Assembly: GCA_009103225.1 (NCBI GenBank)
Contig: RHPI01000777.1
Location: 276,181 to 293,488, forward strand
DNA from: Chlorokybus atmophyticus
Taxonomy: Eukaryota; Plantae; Mesostigma and Chlorokybus algae
DNA: 17,308 bases
Direction of reading: 5' to 3'
The notes beneath the pieces were generated by a model that had not been told where the DNA came from, made no database searches, and saw only the letters and a program-made list of their open reading frames with translations. Both the position numbers and the translations under genes were made by a program. Of this stretch, positions 1 through 17,308 are shown in pieces (within the stretch, counting starts at the first letter, position 1; every line of letters begins with the position of its first letter).

Positions 1-86
<86 letters not shown>
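1..86. repeat. (TC)n microsatellite, truncated by the window edge; probably the pyrimidine-rich 3' end of an intron of the subtilase gene
   Basis: Uninterrupted TC dinucleotide run 1-86, followed by a ctgCAG acceptor at 102-103. Confidence 0.97.
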
Positions 87-103: not shown

Positions 104-1660
104 TGGGATCAACCCTTCGGAAACTGCGCTAATGACACATTGATCTGCTCTTCTATACGTTTGGCTCTTCTGAAGTTGCGCACTTTTACGGTGGCGATCA
201 AGCAAACAACGTTGGTGGCGATCCAGTTGCGGTACGCCAGCCGCTGTTGAATGAGGATGTCAAATTAATCTACAGCGCGCTAATTACGTTTTCTGCAGAT
301 GTTCACCTTAGACAACACTGACAGCATTTATGATGGTTATGCCTACCTCGCAATCCAACGCGCGAGTGGACCAGCACCGCACCGCGTTAAGTATGTTTAC
401 CACGGTGGATATGGACCAACCGAGTACATCACGAATTCTGCAGAGTCCTTCGGTCATTCACAGGCCCGTGGTTGCTTCTCCACTGCCGCTGCATCGTAAG
501 TGGTAGTGGACATGGTCATGACCTGCATAACAATGGTACAGTTTACTTTAGCAGCGATAATTCTCTGGTTGTAAACAGCTATCCAAAGACGCCACCATTT
601 GGGTAACTCCTGCTGTTGTGGAGGACTTCAGCTCTCTCGGTGGTGTGCCCACACTCTTCGACCCCCCGGGCACAAGGTCAGTCCCTGCAGCATCACAATA
701 CATTGCTACTTCTGCGCATTGCGATGCATTGATTGCTGAGACGTCCCTCAAATGCAGGCTTGCAACGCCTGTCATCCGTCTCAAGCCCGATGCAACTGCC
801 CCTGGTGAGTGTCTGTTGGCTTAAACACACCCTACACACATGAGCACATGCGCATGCACGCGCACATTACTGTCACAGCATGCCTCTTGCTGCACGTGCG
901 CGCACGTGCACACATGCGTGTGCACTCAAATCGACCCTACAAGACAACATGCACATGCACATGCACATGCACGCACACACCACTGCCACATCATTGCCGC
1001 TTGCACGACTGTCCGTGTACACACAAACACACTCAAAATCCTATATGCACAAGCACATGCACGCGCATGTGCATACAAGCGCGCGCACACTCCAATGTCA
1101 CGGTGTTGCCTGCTCGCATTTATGCGTGCGGGGAACATACATGCATGCACGCACGCACACGTGTGTTCGCGCACATGCGCATGCAAGCATACGACTGTCA
1201 CAGTATTGCGCTTGCTAATCTGCTGTTTGCTTGCTACAGATGGTACAGACACAACTTTCTTCGGTGAGGACAGCGATTCCAACAACTTGCCCAACTTTTT
1301 TGGCACCTCAGCAGCAGGTGATATATGCAATTGCTGTCGTATGGCAGTTGTGTTTGCTATTGACGGCTCTGAACCTGTACACACTTGTTGTGCAGCTCCA
1401 CATGCAGGCGCTTTGGCAGCGCTTCTGCGCCAGGCCAACCCGAGTTTGACTCCCGACCAAGTGTACAATATCCTGAGACTTACTGCTGATGACATGAACA
1501 ATCCATACACCCATGGGTTTGACTTTGGCTTCGACTTTTCCACTGGGTGAGTAAGACATTTCATAGTCTTTGTGCCGCTATCTTGTCGAAAGTTTACACC
1601 TGTTGTCACTTACTTTGAGACTTGTGCAGGTACGGTTTTGTCAATGCCTTGACCGCATAC
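104..1660 (+). other. Peptidase S8 (subtilase) C-terminal half; catalytic Ser in GTSAAAPH, split by the intron 1318-1395
   Basis: Motifs GH..A.G...A, FSS.GG.P.LFD..G.R, KPD.TAPDG, NFFGTSAAAPH, ANPSLTPDQV..IL..TA and G.GFVNA are the conserved subtilase C-terminal series. Confidence 0.92.
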
Positions 1661-2890
1661 ACGGCCGCCAAATGCCGCATTGCATGCGGGACGACCACCG
1701 TGACATGGCCATTCTATCTTGATCCCGGGTGCGGTCCGCAAGGGTTCCAGCTGACCTGCAACTCAGGGGTGCTGAGCTACGCCACACCTTCCGGGACCTA
1801 CCAGATTGCGCCACCCCTTCGCACGGACTACTTGCTGCTGCCGAGCGCAGTCACTACGCAGCTAACCGCGTACGGCTGCCCCACCGGCAGCACCTCAAAG
1901 GGCTTGTCCACCATCGGCACGCCATTCAACATCAGCGGAAGCAATGTGGTCATGGGCTATGGTAACAATGTGAAGGCAAGCTTCACCACCTACAGTGCGA
2001 ACAATGCTCAGATCAGGACTGCCAGCTGCACGACCAGCAACACCAACGTGCCAACCTACTGCAACGGCACACGGTGCTGCTCGATGCCTCAAAGCCAGGC
2101 CGCCTTCCGCATTGCCTTCTCCAGCTCTGGTGGCTGCGGCGGTGCGGATATTTTGTGGCCTGCAGCAGTGAAGACCACACCTGTCACCCCGGCCAACGCC
2201 AAAGTCAACTACTTCCTGCGCTTGGACTTCACCGCACCACCTAGGTACGTGCTGCTTTTATACACTGACACTCTCGGAAAGACGTCTTTGCAGCCCAACC
2301 AGTGCTGTACCCGTAGCTTACACACAATTTCCGTCAGGCCAAAAAGCACGCAAGGTTGTCCCGCAGCCATCTGGTCTGCATCATCTTACACGTGCCGCTG
2401 GCCCTACAACCTGCCACGCACAACAACGCTCAGAGATGCTTTTGCGAGCACTGCAGCTAACAAGGCCATTGTGGACTCACGCTTCCCCTCCTCGACCACG
2501 CTGCAGCAAGCGTTGACTTCTACTGGAACGAGCGTGGTAACTGTCCTCATCAGTGCCAGTTGCGCTTCACTGCATCTGCAGAAACTCTCCTTGACTTGTC
2601 TACCTGTGTGTACAGTATGCCAAACTGGGAGTCCAGGCAGTAGTGGCATTACTCAACGCTTACCAGATACGTTACCCGCTGTACGTTAGCGAAGTTCAGA
2701 CGCAGTTCCTGGCTGCATTGAAATCCACTGGAGACCGTAAGTGGTCATTGCGCCTGGGTTACGCCTGCAACACTGCATAATCATCATCAGCTGACATGGT
2801 GTGCTTGGCTTGTGTTGTGCAGCTATCGCGCTCATCAGCATATTCACGAGAAACAATGTAAACAAGTGGTGCCCGCTCACCATATGCTAA
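104..2890 (+). CDS. Spliced gene, 5' end outside the window: S8 subtilase + WAK-like Cys-rich ectodomain + PDF1-like C-terminal domain; two frameshifts (recent pseudogene or consensus errors)
   Basis: Inferred exons 104-231, 299-495, 579-676, 758-804, 1240-1317, 1396-1546, 1630-2244, 2338-2536, 2616-2736 and 2823-2890 (TAA 2888-2890; ten segments, the first two domain-bearing ones disrupted). All introns are GT..AG, phase-compatible and 67-93 nt except one of 435 nt. Joined protein: WDQPFGNCAND/IDLLFY..GGDPVA|MFTLDN..GHSQARGCFSTAAAS|YPKTPPFG/VTPAVVEDFSSLGGVPTLFDPPGTR|LATPVIRLKPDATAP|DGTDTTFFGEDSDSNNLPNFFGTSAA|APHAGALAALL..GFDFSTG|YGFVNA..CGTTTVTWPFYLDPGCGPQGFQLTC..|..QGCPAAIW..|YAKLGVQAVVALLNAY..|PIALISIFTRNNVNKWCPLTIC*. 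Frameshifts at ~137 (extra AC) and ~601 (one G missing). Confidence 0.85.
826..1195. repeat. Alternating purine-pyrimidine low-complexity tract (CACATG/GCAC) inside intron 805-1239
   Basis: Dense CA/TG/GC dinucleotides; perfect 20-bp palindrome TGCACGTGCGCGCACGTGCA at 891-910. Confidence 0.9.
1670..2100 (+). other. WAK-type galacturonan-binding (GUB_WAK_bind-like) Cys-rich extracellular domain
   Basis: C..ACG..TVTWPFYLDPGCGPQGFQLTC matches the WAK pattern C..xCG.v.I.YPF....gC...gF.LtC. Downstream TPFNISGSN and CNGTRCC match the WAK PF..S..N and C.G..CC motifs. Confidence 0.8.
2350..2890 (+). other. PDF1 (protodermal factor 1)-like C-terminal domain
   Basis: Spliced sequence GCPAAIW...WP..TLRDAF...TTLQQALTSTG.SVYAKLGVQAVVALLNAY..RYPLYVSEVQTQFLAAL..IFTRNN...CPL follows the remembered PDF1 pattern GtC.yW...v..AF...L.qAL.nt...L.regtA.lLNs...fP.t..qV...F.aaL.....F..aNe. 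Confidence 0.65.
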
Positions 2891-7812: not shown

Positions 7813-9153
7813 GTTTCTTATATATATAGCGTGCTGATGTGGATTGGTGTTGATCGCTGGCTAGCTGAGCAAGCTCTGTCATCATGGATGGTGGACAAAG
7901 CTGTTACAAGGGCGCACCGTGCACTTGACCTGGCAGTTGCCGCAAGCAGGTGGGCACCACCTATTCCCCCTAGTCAACCTCCCGAGCCCAGGCAACCACC
8001 GTCAGAGTCTGCTACGAAGAAGTGGCTGGATATCTACCTAAAGATCGTGACAGCCCTGGAAGATTCTGGTGTCCAGGCGGCTCTCGTCAACGAGATTATG
8101 TAGTTCATCTTGGGCCAGATAAATTCTGTGGTCAAGCTGGCCTTGGAGGTTCCTTTGTAACACGAGCAGTTACGGGATGACATCGCCAGCCTCATAGGCG
8201 ACATAATGTCGAACAGCCCTGTCACGGATGAGCTGCCGACCGACATTGCCGCCGTGGATACACTAGCCGCGCTCGGCATGCCTGTTCCTCAGCGCCTGAC
8301 CGTCTGTCCCACATGCAAGTACTTGTTTGATGCACCTTATCCCACACTCAATGAAGATGACGAGGACTGGGACACGGGCGAGACCAAGCAAAAAATGATT
8401 GATCGCATCGCAACACACCGTGCGGAGGGGGATGCGGCAGGGTTCGCAAAGAATGTTGCAATTTCTTGTACAATAGTATAGGTGCCTGGCTCAGCGCCAA
8501 GTTAGATGTCCCTTCAATTGCTCACGACTATCTAGAGGAATGGCGCCACAAAGATGAATGGATGCATGTCCCTGTGGAACAACTACCCGCTGCAAACACT
8601 GAGTACCGGCATGGTGCGGAGAAGCGGCATCACTGCAGTTTCTGGGACCCTCGCCACAAAATCAAGCTGCCTGTTTCCTGCGCATTCTGCTACCACATCC
8701 CGGACGTCGACTTGGAGCATCACAGCGCAGGAGATCACGTGACAGTTGAATGCTCAGAGTGCCACAAACCCAACCATCAGATGGTTGGGTTTGTGCAGCA
8801 AGCTCTTGGCGACCCTCGCAACATAGCCCTGTTGATCCACGCCGACGGCTTCAGCTCAACAACCACTGTGAAGCACAGCTGCACCGTGGTCAGTGCCTCT
8901 GTACTCAATGGAGGGAAGCATTTTCTCATAGGAGTCTTCCTTCATGCCTTTGCTATTTGTCCCTACTAATTAGCTCCCGAACGGTGTGGACAGTCTGGAG
9001 CCCTTTCTTAAATCACTGGTGCGTGACCTGGAGAACCTCTACTTGAACGGCTTCACTGTTCGTTATGGCCTCGACTCCAATCATGATGACAGCCGCGTGC
9101 TTGATCGACGACCAGGTAATGACTTGGTTATCTCATGTCATATCATCTTTATC

Positions 9154-9302
9154 ACCCAAAGTCTCATAGGCACTGTCCAGTGTCTTATGCAGTCCGTTGC
9201 TATGACCTTAATCTCATAGGCACTGTTCAGTAGCTGCAACTTTTTATAGCATATCTGCCTTCTTGCGGTCTATGAAACTGTCATAGGCTGCACTGCTCAG
9301 TG
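9154..9302. repeat. Intronic tandem unit, copy 2 (shortened)
   Basis: ctcataggcactgt at 9163 and 9213, and a degenerate tcataggctgcactgctcagtg at 9281, inside intron 9116-9362. Confidence 0.8.
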
Positions 9303-10719
9303 CGGCCTCTGATAGTCCTACCAGACTGGTGTTGTGAGATACTGATGTTGCCTTCATTGCAGGTCAAGAGATAACGCTGCGCGTAGTGCTGTGGGCATGG
9401 ACGGGTGACCAGCCAGCGCAATGTGAGATAGGCCAGTTTAAGAATGGAGGCCTCGTCCCCTGCCGGCGTTGTCTCCTCAAAGCCACTTAGCACCAAGTGC
9501 CCCGGCGTGCTGAGCAGGGTGAAGCTACGAGGACACGTACTGACCATATTTATGGTGACAATTGCTACTATTGCCGCCATCCCCCAGCAGAGAGAGCAGC
9601 AAAGGATGCGTATGTCAACGCATGGTGGACTCACTCGAAGGCCAAAACCGAAAAGAAAAATCAATGGAGTGCGGCATCAATGGGAAATCTCCACTCTGGC
9701 GGTTGTGGCATTTGTATGAATTTAACCCTTGCCGCAACTGGGTCTATGACACTATGCACCTGTTGCTGGAGGGGCTTTGCAAGAGTTTGGTGCACAATAC
9801 GCTTGGTGCAGACAGTTTAAAGCATGTCCAAGACATTGCCGAGGTGGAGCGCAGGCTGTCCCAGATGCGCATAATACGCCCCATGGACTCGAAGAGCAAA
9901 CGTTTCCCAAAAGGCATCAGCAAGCACCTGGCTTGGTTCAAGGCCCAAGAATTGCAGATGTTCGTGCAGTATGCTGTGCCCTACTCTGTGTCCGATCTGA
10001 TAGACGAAGCAACCAGAGACGTCAGCTTTGCGCTTCACTTGCTCATCCGCATCTTCTTCCACAACTCTCGCCTACATGGATGGACTGCGGAGTTGTTGGA
10101 ACTTGCTGACGCTCTTTTATAATATTAGAGGGTCTACTTGGAGGACCTGTTTGGCACCAACAAAAGGCCCAACAAGCATGTGGCCGGTGCCGGTCACATT
10201 CTGGAGGACATCATCTGGCACGGGAGTCATGATATGTACTGGTGTTTTGTGCAAGAGCGCACTGTGTCCAACTATGTCAACACCTTCACCAACGGGAAGC
10301 AGTTTGAGATCATACACCAAGGAGATGGTTTCTGAGGACGCTCAACGTCATGCGAGAAGATCAGCGGATTGGAAGGCAGTTGTGCCACCGAGCTGATGAT
10401 GTAATGGCGTACTCTCAGCAGGTTTACCAGCCTTTGAGTGGAGCATGTAGTGACTGTCATTACGAAGTGCGCACTTAGAAGCACGCCATGGAGCTCTGGA
10501 CCCTTGATGAAAAATTCCCAGACTTGGAGCATGCGCGACTGATCAAAGAAAAGAGCATCCTTATTGGCAGCACCAGGAAGCCTGTCACTTTTGAGGGACC
10601 CTTGGCCTTGGAAACGCATTTAAAACATCACTGGCAACTTGCTTGCAGGCATACGCAAGTTCCGCGCATATCTGCGTAACGGGGTCATCTACAGGTGTAT
10701 AATTTCGTCTACGCCTTAT

Positions 10720-10919
10720 CCATTGCTGCGACCTGAAGACTCATAGGCACTGGACAATGTCTTCGAGGTATGCATTCCATTGCTGCGACCTGAAGACTCA
10801 CAGGCACTGTCCACTGTCTACGAGCTATGCAATCCAATACTGTGACCTAAAGTCTCATAAGCACTGAACAGTGCCAGTCCGATCTATGACACAGCAATGC
10901 ACGCGTGTGTCTTGCTTGT
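10720..10919. repeat. Intronic 57-bp tandem unit (about 2.7 copies) plus terminal block, copy 3
   Basis: Unit starts at 10720, 10777 and 10834 (ccattgctgcgacctgaagactcataggcactg...), inside intron 10695-10944. Confidence 0.9.
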
Positions 10920-11408
10920 AAAGCCTTTATATTGGCATTTGCAGACGCAGAGGCGTTGATAATGTAAAGATGGCGGACCCAACTGTCGCACCATGCCGGG
11001 TGGATGAGATTTACCTGTTCAATTGGCGGAAGTCAACTATCCATGTGCAAGTGCGGCCTTATTTCAAGAAGCGTGATGCCATGGGCAATGACTTAATTGA
11101 CAGAGACACCGGTGCACAGTGCATTGGGTGTTTGGCAGATGAGATTACGCTCATCAGTGGAGACCAGTTGCAACGCAAACTCTGGGTGTTGCTCAATCAT
11201 AATCTCGCAAATCATCAATTAGCGTACGACTATGACAGCACAGAGTTGAGAGTCACCGCAACCGACATCCCCTTGCCGGTGTGGTCAGAAAAGGGCGATG
11301 TCCTGAAGATGCGGCACAACGGCAAGTCCATTTTTGACTTCAGACTTCCGCATGAGTCCCCAGATGAAGATCCTGCTGACCCACCCCCTTGGGTTGTTGT
11401 GGTCAAAG

Positions 11409-11804
11409 TGTTGACATACACACGTGCAAATGACACGCCAACAACATCAACACAAGAGCATGACTGCTACTGCCGCCATAGCATCCGCACACATGCTACA
11501 TCGTGACCTCTTATCTTTATTGCAACAAGTCTGGGCTTTATACCCCGCCAGTCTCTACACACGTCTACATTGGCAAGCACCGCGTGCGCTATACTTAGCC
11601 GATTGCTGTTCTGTAAGCTATGCTGTCTAGCTCACAACCAGAGCTTTCCAACAAGCTAAGCCACGCCTGCTAAGCTTACGTATCCACAAAGCTACGCGGT
11701 TTCTCCCAACGCTCTACTCAGCATCTGGTCCGGAGTCCGTCCTGGCTCGACCATCTTGCTAAGTCCGGAGTCCACGTGCTCAGCCCATACCTTCAACCCT
11801 CAAC
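11409..11804 (-). mobile_element. Solo LTR related to the copia B LTR, inserted in a transposase exon
   Basis: Starts TGTTGA and ends ..CTCAAC. Shares collinear blocks with 16383-16807 (acacacgtctac, gcaagcac, caaccagagcttt, aacaagct, ccatcttgctaagtccgga). Protein-like reading resumes after it (PWVVVVK|FYMKGKLTG). No clean 5-bp TSD. Confidence 0.8.
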
Positions 11805-14569: not shown

Positions 14570-16382
14570 ATGGCAACCACTGGATCAGAGAAGGAGAAGT
14601 TCACCATCAAACCCTTGGGAGATGACAACTACGCCAGCTAGAGCTTTAAGATGAAGATGAAGATGAAGCTCATCTACACAGAGCTGTGGGACTACGTAGA
14701 CCCAAAGGGGAGTGCGCCAATTGGTAACGAGTCTGCATGGATGCGAAGCAGTTTGCGTGCTTTGGCTTTGATGAGTATACATGTTGAGCCCTTTTATAGG
14801 CTACTGCTACAGATGCAGTCTAATGCCAAGCATGCATGGGAAGCTTTGGAAAATATGTTCTCTACACGCTCTGTTGGTTGTAAGATTGAGCTCAAGCAAG
14901 CGTTCAACAACATGAGGAAGCTTGCTAGTGAGACAGTTACAGAGTATTTGGGACGTGCACAGAAACTCAGAAATGATTTGACCTCTATTGGAGATTCAGT
15001 CTCAGAGGATTTTCTATGCTTGAATGTGCTGTCTGAGTTGCCACGAGAGTTCGAGATTGTTGTGATCATGTTGGAGGGTATTAGTACCACTCAGAAGTTG
15101 ACCCTTAAAGAGATTTTGCCTATCCCGCTGAAGGCAGAATCTAGGATCAGGGGCAACGAGGCTGATGGAGAGTCCAGTGCGTTCTCTGCTCGAGCACAGT
15201 CATCTGGAGGAGCTGGTACCAGCGGTAACAACAATGGCAACAAGGGTGGAGATCAGAAGAAGCAGAAGAAGCCTTTTAAGGGGAAGTGCTTCCATTGCGA
15301 CCAATTTGGGCATCGGAAGAGTGATTGCCAGCAGCTGAGGTCAGCAAAGGGCAATCAGGGTGGACAGAAAGGAGTGGGTGGAGCAGTTGCCTTCACAGCA
15401 TCCACAGAGATCAGGCGTCATCCTGGGTGGGTGTTTGATTCTGGCTGTACACAGCATCTGACTCCAAATGCTGGGCTGCTACTCAACTACAAAGTTCAAT
15501 CCAGTCCACGGAGTGTGGAGGTTCTGGGTGGACAGCTGGAGGTAGCGGGTACAGGCCAATCAGTGCTTCATTATAAGACAGGAGAAGGTGTGTACAGGGT
15601 GGAGCTGAAGGAGGTTCTTCATGTTCCTCGTGCACAGGCTATCCTCTTCTCCATGAAGGTCGCATTGAAGGCTGGAGCTGATTTGTCAGGACAAGGAGCA
15701 GAAGTCTGTCTGCGCATTGATGGCAAGGTGTGTCTCATCGCGAGAGAACAGCAGGGCGGCCTTTACGTGATAGAAGAAGCTGAGACTGACACTGGTGGCG
15801 ACAGTTCCTGAGTCAACTGAACTTTGGCATCGAAGGTTTGGGCATCATGGCTATGACAACCTGCATCGTTTGGTAGCAGAAGATTTGGTCAGCGGCATCA
15901 ATGTGAGCAAGCTGCAGATCAAGCAGGCCAAAGGAGTGTTGTGCGAGCCATGTGTGTTGTCCAAGATGCATAGGCAACCTTTTCAGCGATCTGAGAGCAT
16001 CAGCGAGCATGTTGGACAGTTGGTACACACAGATGTGTGTGGTACACTCGAGCCATCAAAGGGGGGAGCATCTTACATTGTCACCTTTCTTGATGATTTC
16101 TCCAAGCTGTCATTGGTGCGTCCTGTGCAGCTCAAGTCAGATGTACCAGCTGTGGTGAAAGAGGTGGTGCTGTGGTTCAAAAATATGTTTGGCAAATCTG
16201 TGAAGACAGTCAGAAGTGACAAGGAGGGGAGTACCTGAAGAAAGAGCTATCTGCATTCTGGTCTTCGCAAGGCATTGTGCATTAGACAACAACACCGTAC
16301 ACTCCGCAGCAGAATGGTGCAGCAGAATGGCTGAATCTGACTTTTATGAAAAGGGTGAGAGCTATGCTGAGTGATGCAAAGT
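14570..16382 (+). pseudogene. gag-pol: Copia A gag-protease-integrase polyprotein, disrupted
   Basis: ATG at 14570; TGG->TAG at 14639-14641; UBN2-type gag; zinc knuckle CFHCDQFGHRKSDC; protease WVFDSGCTQH; LWHRRFGH..CEPC; HTDVCG, RSD, TPQQNGAAE. Frameshifts near 15795 and 16230, and a stop in GIVH*TT. Confidence 0.93.
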
Positions 16383-16849: not shown

Positions 16850-17308
16850 TCAAACACAGATGCCAAGTCCTGCGCAACAAGTCTTGAACTTGAGCGGTGA
16901 CAATGGCTTTGTCATGAAGTCCGTCAGCATGCCCTCAGTGCTGCAATACTGGAACTCCACCTCCTTCCTTGTGACTCTGTCACGCACAAAGTGATGCATG
17001 ACATCAATGTGCTTCGTCCTTGCCGAGGCGATAGGGTGCTTCAACAACTTGATGGCTCCTTGGTTGTCACAGTTGATGACGATGCACGCCATGGGGTGCT
17101 CCAAGTCTGCCATGAGCTTACGAAGCCAGAGTGCCTCCTTCACTACTGCTGCCGCTGCCATGTACTCAGCCTCTGATGTAGATGCTGCTGTTGTTGGCTG
17201 CAGCCTGCTGTTCCAGCTCACCACGCCTCCGTTCAGCTTGAAGACGTAGCCTGTAGTGGACCTCCTGCTGTTGAGGTCACCAGCAAAGTCCGAGTCGCAG
17301 TAGCCCTC
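16850..17308 (-). CDS. pol: Copia-type RNase H (C-terminus of pol), uninterrupted within the window
   Basis: [60 protein letters not shown]; 153 codons to the stop with no internal stop. Confidence 0.95.

Follow-up and report, generated by a model that had tools for sequence, protein, structure and literature searches.

A frame-broken gene copy and its relatives in Chlorokybus: a predicted S8 protease with WAK-type and PDF1-type C-terminal modules

The window analysed here is a stretch of 17,308 nt of Chlorokybus atmophyticus DNA, and the locus under study occupies positions 104-2890 of it, on the + strand, where the 3' two-thirds of a gene can be read. Ten GT-AG exons on this strand encode, in order, the latter half of a clan-SB serine protease (S8), a Cys-rich module of the type found in wall-associated kinases (WAK) and a C-terminal domain of the PDF1_C type. 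The signal peptide and the Asp/His region of the protease belong to the 5' part of the gene, which lies outside the window. Our reading, held with slightly better than even confidence, is that the stretch belongs to a small gene family specific to Chlorokybus, whose sequences predict a protease with an anchoring or targeting tail, and that the window copy is an inactivated member of it. As assembled, the window copy cannot make the fusion protein, because two frame breaks interrupt its protease exons. The combination of modules is new and its parts are known.

A word search returned a single public match, a 437-aa fragment model of Chlorokybus atmophyticus (P0001, jgi/Chlat1 ChrspC232943S00916), in which the domain order is identical and the splice joints are exactly those inferred in the window. 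An exhaustive HMMER search, made like the other HMMER searches reported here against 1.84 billion representative proteins, gave 34 matches in all. The full three-part proteins are P0002 (Chrsp46S06086, 969 aa) and P0003 (Chrsp66S00566, 915 aa), both from Chlorokybus, and two further matches, P0005 and P0009, are degenerate Chlorokybus fragments of the family. No protein outside Chlorokybus with the three-part order was found in this search, so that the architecture search proposed in an earlier, sequence-only reading of the locus (the initial annotation) confines the order to this alga. P0002 is ~44-49% identical to the window over the WAK and PDF1_C parts. The N-termini of P0002 and P0003 are hydrophobic and signal-peptide-like, and both proteins supply the remaining part of the protease. 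The window copy shares the three-part order and the splice joints with P0001, P0002 and P0003; their frames are open, whereas its own is broken twice in the protease, and the three models represent paralogues (or orthologues of another strain) and not the window locus.

The initial annotation had also put the architecture forward as a candidate for an undescribed system. We found no description of the S8-WAK-PDF1 architecture, or of GUB_WAK_bind paired with Chlorokybus, in the literature searched, and WAK, subtilase and protodermal factor all go unmentioned in the Chlorokybus genome paper (PMC7027972). To that extent the claim stands. It has to be narrowed in that public models, from Chlorokybus only, already hold all three Pfam accessions, which were assigned automatically.

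Exon layout and joints

The window exons were searched one by one, and the spliced public model P0001 was used as a proxy for the joined protein. The exons, with one long intron, are as follows.

104-231, + strand: protease exon with the LQWDQPF motif, then IDLLFY...NNVGGDPVA; two extra bases near 135-138, with segments in frames 2 and 1
299-495, + strand: protease exon, MFTLDNTDS...RVKYVY...GHSQ...AAA, with acceptor cag and donor gtaagt; 43% identity to P0002 residues 430-501, also aligning to the bacterial loci L001 and L003
579-676, + strand: protease exon holding frame break 2, the run 601-603 being one G short
758-804, + strand: protease exon, RLATPVIRLKPDATAP; 69% identity to P0003 residues 485-500
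805-1239, + strand: long intron, rich in CA/CATG; depth of the run contigs zero at 848-1219, with a joint across
1240-1317, + strand: protease exon ending in the catalytic-Ser motif GTSAA; aligns to P0002, P0003 and bacterial homologues (...NFFGTSAA)
1396-1546, + strand: protease exon, APHAGALAALL...TADDM...FDFSTG; match in the Protein Data Bank (PDB) to the alkaline serine protease 1v6c
1630-2244, + strand: end of the protease (YGFVNALTAY, 1630-1668) and WAK-type module, with GUB_WAK_bind at ~1673-1807 and a beta-rich extension to 2244; 10 Cys
2338-2536, + strand: first part of PDF1_C, GCPAAIW...CRWP...TLQQAL, behind a short PPRP linker; covered by motif alignments A1 and A3
2616-2736, + strand: middle part of PDF1_C, AVVALLNAYQIRYP...FLAALKS; 85% identical to P0001 residues 376-415
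2823-2888, + strand: end of PDF1_C, NKWCPLTIC, and stop codon TAA at 2886-2888; ending common to P0001, P0002 and P0003

The intron at 805-1239 has 435 bases, nearly all of them low-complexity repeats of the CA/CATGCAC type, and holds spurious long open reading frames (ORFs) on both strands. The public model P0001 begins inside the equivalent intron. Just upstream of the acceptor at 101-103, window positions 1-86 form a perfect (TC)n microsatellite with 43 or more units, which probably lies within the intron preceding exon 104-231.

Two public sequencing runs (X1 and X2), only guessed to be RNA, were kept as contigs. These are 90-99% like the window, and by their sequence they are assigned to paralogues or to a sister strain or species, not demonstrably to the window locus. 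Chlorokybus isolates are deeply diverged, and RNA-seq data for four of them appeared in 2021 (PMC8611356). The contigs show GT..AG joints over introns at about 676/758, 804/1240, 1317/1396, 1546/1630 and 2736/2823. One contig crosses 1546/1630 from the S8 exon and runs on to 2088, and the loose ends of contigs beyond 2240-2245 carry the first letters of the PDF1_C exon, which indicates that the intron 2245-2337 is spliced out. Provided that the contigs are RNA, as the removal of introns from them suggests, the three-part message is spliced as one in close relatives. Every 3' splice joint is backed by P0001 and by these contigs. Among the 40 listed differences between window and contigs, 29 fall at third codon positions, pointing to purifying selection.

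The protease core and its two C-terminal modules

Exon 1630-2244 encodes 204 residues in one open stretch; the first 12 form the last S8 helix, with the Cys-rich module directly behind. Pfam assigns this module to GUB_WAK_bind (PF13947) at 31.1 bits, against a gathering cutoff of 29.4. In the HMMER search, land-plant proteins match the module over up to ~180 residues, including a Camellia 'wall-associated receptor kinase-like 15' and a Urochloa protein with a kinase domain plus GUB_WAK_bind (Pfam). When the module is aligned with plant WAK and WAK-like (WAKL) proteins (alignment A2), C15, C19, G20, P27, C34 and C43 are invariant (C-x3-CG...P...C...C), and a YCNGxxCC block is shared. The exon is 94% identical to P0001 and only 23-31% identical to plant WAK ectodomains. 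What the fusion has in common with land-plant WAK and WAKL proteins is thus an ectodomain module homologous over ~150-180 residues, with its Cys framework and CNGxxCC block. The two differ in that several plant Cys positions are missing from the Chlorokybus module, and in that WAK and WAKL proteins have EGF repeats, a transmembrane (TM) helix and a kinase, whereas the fusion has none of these and carries the module C-terminal of an enzyme.

An AlphaFold2 (AF2) model of the WAK module is mostly beta (pLDDT 82.6). Foldseek against the PDB gave no match at E <= 0.001, birnavirus capsids at TM ~0.24 being noise, and no WAK ectodomain was among the PDB fold-search matches of the module. A carbohydrate-binding fold was considered and set aside, the VIA-align matches to the C-terminal beta domains of Tk-SP subtilisin and to some carbohydrate-binding modules being too weak.

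The last three exons carry GC..W, CRWP, TLQQAL, AVVALLNAYQIRYP, FLAALKS and a final WCPLTIC, and on sequence and model evidence we assign this tail to the PDF1_C domain. The precomputed accession on P0001 is PF27764.1, and the window region is 65-85% identical to P0001 there; PF27764 was assigned to the window domain by way of P0001 and moss proteins. A search with the domain alignment A1 retrieved moss proteins of Ceratodon and Physcomitrium that have PF27764 as their only domain. The AF2 model of P0001 residues 300-437 is all-alpha (pLDDT 92), and its top structure match in the ESM Atlas is the cluster 'PF27764 PDF1_C', with 328 Streptophyta members (TM 0.82). In alignment A3, C17, W22, W31 and AALLN are invariant and the AALLNA block is nearly so. 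A word search with the PDF1-like region of P0001 gave a self-match only, an ESM Atlas feature search with it gave no usable match, and the name 'protodermal factor' stood on no match in any source. We take the link to PDF1 from the Pfam name PDF1_C and from the Arabidopsis protein. Plant PDF1 is a small, secreted, proline-rich protein of the epidermis. The likeness to land-plant Protodermal factor 1 consists of the helical C-terminal domain with GC..W...WP, TLxQAL, AALLNA and the terminal Cys; in Chlorokybus, PDF1_C terminates a protease instead. Together, GUB_WAK_bind on the window exon and, through P0001, PF27764 and the PDF1_C cluster uphold the order S8, WAK-type, PDF1-type that had been proposed from the sequence.

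No membrane helix was found in the window exons, where the maximum 19-residue Kyte-Doolittle mean is 0.95, and Pfam detected no EGF repeat or kinase in the window exons, P0001, P0002 or P0003. With the stop codon directly at the end of PDF1_C, the earlier statement that the protein ends with neither TM helix nor kinase holds.

Bacterial surface proteins with DUF11, DUF7507 or SdrD_B domains have the PDF1_C fold as well, and the sequence search returned bacterial or metagenomic homologues of the domain (P0010, P0026 and P0034). P0004 and P0033, which are metagenome or Logan proteins, have 2-6 tandem PDF1_C-like domains with acidic low-complexity linkers between them, and P0034 has a PDF1_C-like domain plus a tail resembling a type IX secretion system (T9SS) sorting signal. 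These architectures indicate that the fold is widespread in bacterial surface proteins.

Up to 1546, the exons encode the latter half of the clan-SB serine protease, with the motifs LQWDQPF, NNVGGDP, RVKYVY, FSSLGG, KPDATAP and GTSAA/APHAG. The last of these, which contains the catalytic Ser and agrees with the S8 pattern GTSxAxP, is split across exons 1240-1317 and 1396-1546. Pfam Peptidase_S8 (PF00082) reaches 21.4 bits on a single exon (1398-1544), just under the cutoff of 21.8, and 41.6 bits on the corresponding region of P0001. At the site expected for the catalytic Asp, P0002 has D and P0003 has N (VVSNSF); at the site expected for the His, both have D(A/E)GRAM instead of HGT. Judging from these residues, the catalytic triad of the family may be non-classical, or some of its members may lack activity.

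The protease core of the paralogues matched 45 bacterial loci, at up to 42% identity over 476 aa, with relatives in Marinibaculum, Hormoscilla, Saprospiraceae, Steroidobacteraceae and Solirubrobacterales, and by sequence the core is of bacterial type. In the bacterial proteins scanned, the core is followed C-terminally by RTX repeats, Calx-beta or a T9SS sorting tail. The closest relatives, L001 and L005 (Marinibaculum and Hormoscilla), are large proteins, 970-1240 aa long, with RTX repeats or Calx-beta. The algal proteins thus resemble the secreted bacterial S8 proteases of the LQWDxPF subfamily in the core and in having a variable C-terminal module behind it; they differ in that the bacterial tails are RTX, Calx-beta or T9SS and never WAK or PDF1_C, and in that the algal genes carry spliceosomal introns. 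Local profile searches of the tails found neither a WAK nor a PDF1_C module in the 45 bacterial homologues. A joint arrival of S8 and PDF1_C from bacteria was considered and is unsupported, there being no PDF1_C in these tails. With the plant subtilases SBT1-5 (S8A, with I9 prodomain and PA domain) the family shares clan SB, the GTSxAxP motif and a predicted extracellular location, but no I9 or PA was detected by Pfam in P0002 and P0003, and the nearest relatives retrieved are bacterial.

Frame breaks, function and origin

In exon 104-231 the frame shifts after ...QPFGNCAND: LQWDQPFGNCAND is read in frame 2, and IDLLFY...NNVGGDPVA follows directly in frame 1. The spliced frame from upstream stops at TAG 309-311. 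At the second break, the spliced joint 495/579 leads into YPKTPPFG and then TAA 604-606, while the homologous VTPAVVEDFSSLGG... / VTPAVVEDFSS lies in another frame. The X1 and X2 contigs have two letters fewer at 135 and one G more behind 600. Three independent kinds of relatives reveal both breaks (the X1 and X2 contigs, P0002 and P0003, and the bacterial homologues), and no contig covering either site has the window's version of it. Rescue of the frame by alternative splicing was considered and rejected, with no GT/AG pair available at break 1 and the frame at break 2 fixed by the phase of the donor at 496. The initial annotation had missed both breaks, and its treatment of the window copy as a gene for the fusion protein does not survive them.

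We think it probable, if not strongly so, that the window copy is a real and recent pseudogene. Transposons abound in the window around the gene, which counts in the same direction. Two observations pull against this. The breaks lie in short repeats, a G run (GGG(G)) and an AC repeat ((AC)2), which are typical sites of assembly error, and the WAK and PDF1_C exons downstream are fully open and well conserved, so that any inactivation must be recent. On the same grounds, and with substitutions against the run contigs that are mostly of the synonymous type, the copy could be intact, the indels could be errors of assembly, and the locus could encode the complete secreted S8-WAK-PDF1_C protein, as P0002 and P0003 do. 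We give this possibility real but clearly less than even weight: two indels within ~470 bases of one gene are unusual, the contigs uniformly lack the window's version of the sites, the neighbourhood is that of transposons, and PacBio is not mentioned in the Chlorokybus genome paper (PMC7027972), though this may not apply to the window assembly. A more radical view, that the fusion itself is an artefact of the gene model and that a protease gene and a WAK/PDF1 gene are merely adjacent, has in its favour the general risk of manual splicing only, and we consider it nearly untenable. The protease end and GUB_WAK_bind share one uninterrupted exon, so the fusion cannot be a splicing artefact, as the initial annotation had already argued; single run contigs cross both the S8-WAK and the WAK-PDF1_C joints; and three independent public gene models have the identical order.

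The intact members of the family, of 915-969 aa, have in order a putative signal peptide, a bacterial-type S8 protease, a Cys-rich WAK-type module of ~190 aa that shares an exon with the last protease helix, a short Pro-rich linker and a helical PDF1_C domain of ~130 aa, behind which the protein terminates, with no membrane anchor, EGF repeat or kinase. Such a protein would be secreted, and its two C-terminal modules would keep the protease in the cell wall or gelatinous matrix, or direct it there. The window copy would be a recently inactivated paralogue. By analogy, targeting or anchoring is the most likely role of the tail, because the bacterial relatives carry other modules at the corresponding position: the place behind the core would be a slot for secretion or adhesion modules, occupied in the alga by two modules of streptophyte wall proteins. 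Several points tell against our reading. The anchoring role is argued from position and analogy alone; a wide VIA-align search with the WAK module returned generic beta-sandwich or jelly-roll matches only, with Z up to 6.9; and in P0002 and P0003 the Pfam S8 match is limited to profile positions 160-288, leaving the Asp/His half unmatched.

Two other functions of the tail can be imagined. The one suggested in the initial annotation, by pure inference, is that the WAK module binds pectin (homogalacturonan) and couples binding to proteolysis in wall remodelling, signalling or defence. The module does belong to PF13947, and in vitro binding of pectin and oligogalacturonides is described for the WAK1 ectodomain (literature summarised in PMC11684076). 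According to the same source, however, WAKs are dispensable for oligogalacturonide signalling in Arabidopsis, their role as receptors for pectin fragments is disputed, and the predicted galacturonan-binding domain of WAK1 is negatively charged at apoplastic pH. In addition, the Chlorokybus genome paper reports no pectate lyase, rhamnogalacturonate lyase or pectinesterase and only one pectin acetylesterase (PMC7027972), and the identity to plant WAK ectodomains is low, as given above. We regard this mechanism as unlikely. Alternatively, the protein might be a polyprotein from which the protease, by cleaving itself, frees WAK-like and PDF1-like wall proteins, the tail being cargo and not an anchor. 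The short Pro-rich or flexible joints between modules (TAPPRP) would suit such processing, as would the fact that PDF1_C and WAK-type modules stand alone in other streptophytes; but the protease abuts the WAK module, which starts ~5 residues behind the last S8 helix with almost no linker, and this scheme seems to us rather improbable.

Chlorokybus is the streptophyte lineage most distant from land plants, and it has bona fide GUB_WAK_bind and PDF1_C modules on an enzyme, not on a kinase. A 2024 review of receptor kinases reports no WAK-type domain families in Chara, Zygnematophyceae or Coleochaetophyceae and regards such families as confined to land plants (PMC10868138). The presence of both modules in the early-branching Chlorokybus suggests, by their occurrence, that they are older than land plants, with transfer as the alternative. 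We tentatively extend this to a scheme that we hold as possible and doubtful, in which the earliest streptophytes already had both the WAK ectodomain and PDF1_C, as C-terminal modules that directed a secreted, bacterially derived protease to the wall; the former was later recruited to receptor kinases and the latter to epidermal proline-rich proteins. If this is true, the WAK ectodomain is no invention of land plants, and its ancestral job was the tethering of an enzyme, not signalling. The family offers a testable system for asking what two poorly understood wall-protein modules bind, and in what way older secreted proteins gave rise to receptor ectodomains. The significance of the window locus itself is smaller than that of the family, its copy mainly documenting birth-and-death turnover.

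Elsewhere in the window, same-strand ORFs of 91-186 aa at 8206-11506 (+ strand) look like one intron-split or decayed gene, possibly for a DNA-transposon protein; they have no convincing Pfam match (Cys_rich_CPXG at 19 bits, below its cutoff). An ORF at 16853-17224 (- strand), without a Pfam match, resembles the RNase H end of a copia element. At 14651-16235 (+ strand) lies a Ty1/copia element with Retrotran_gag_2, a zinc knuckle, the Pol beta-barrel, the pre-integrase domain and the integrase core.

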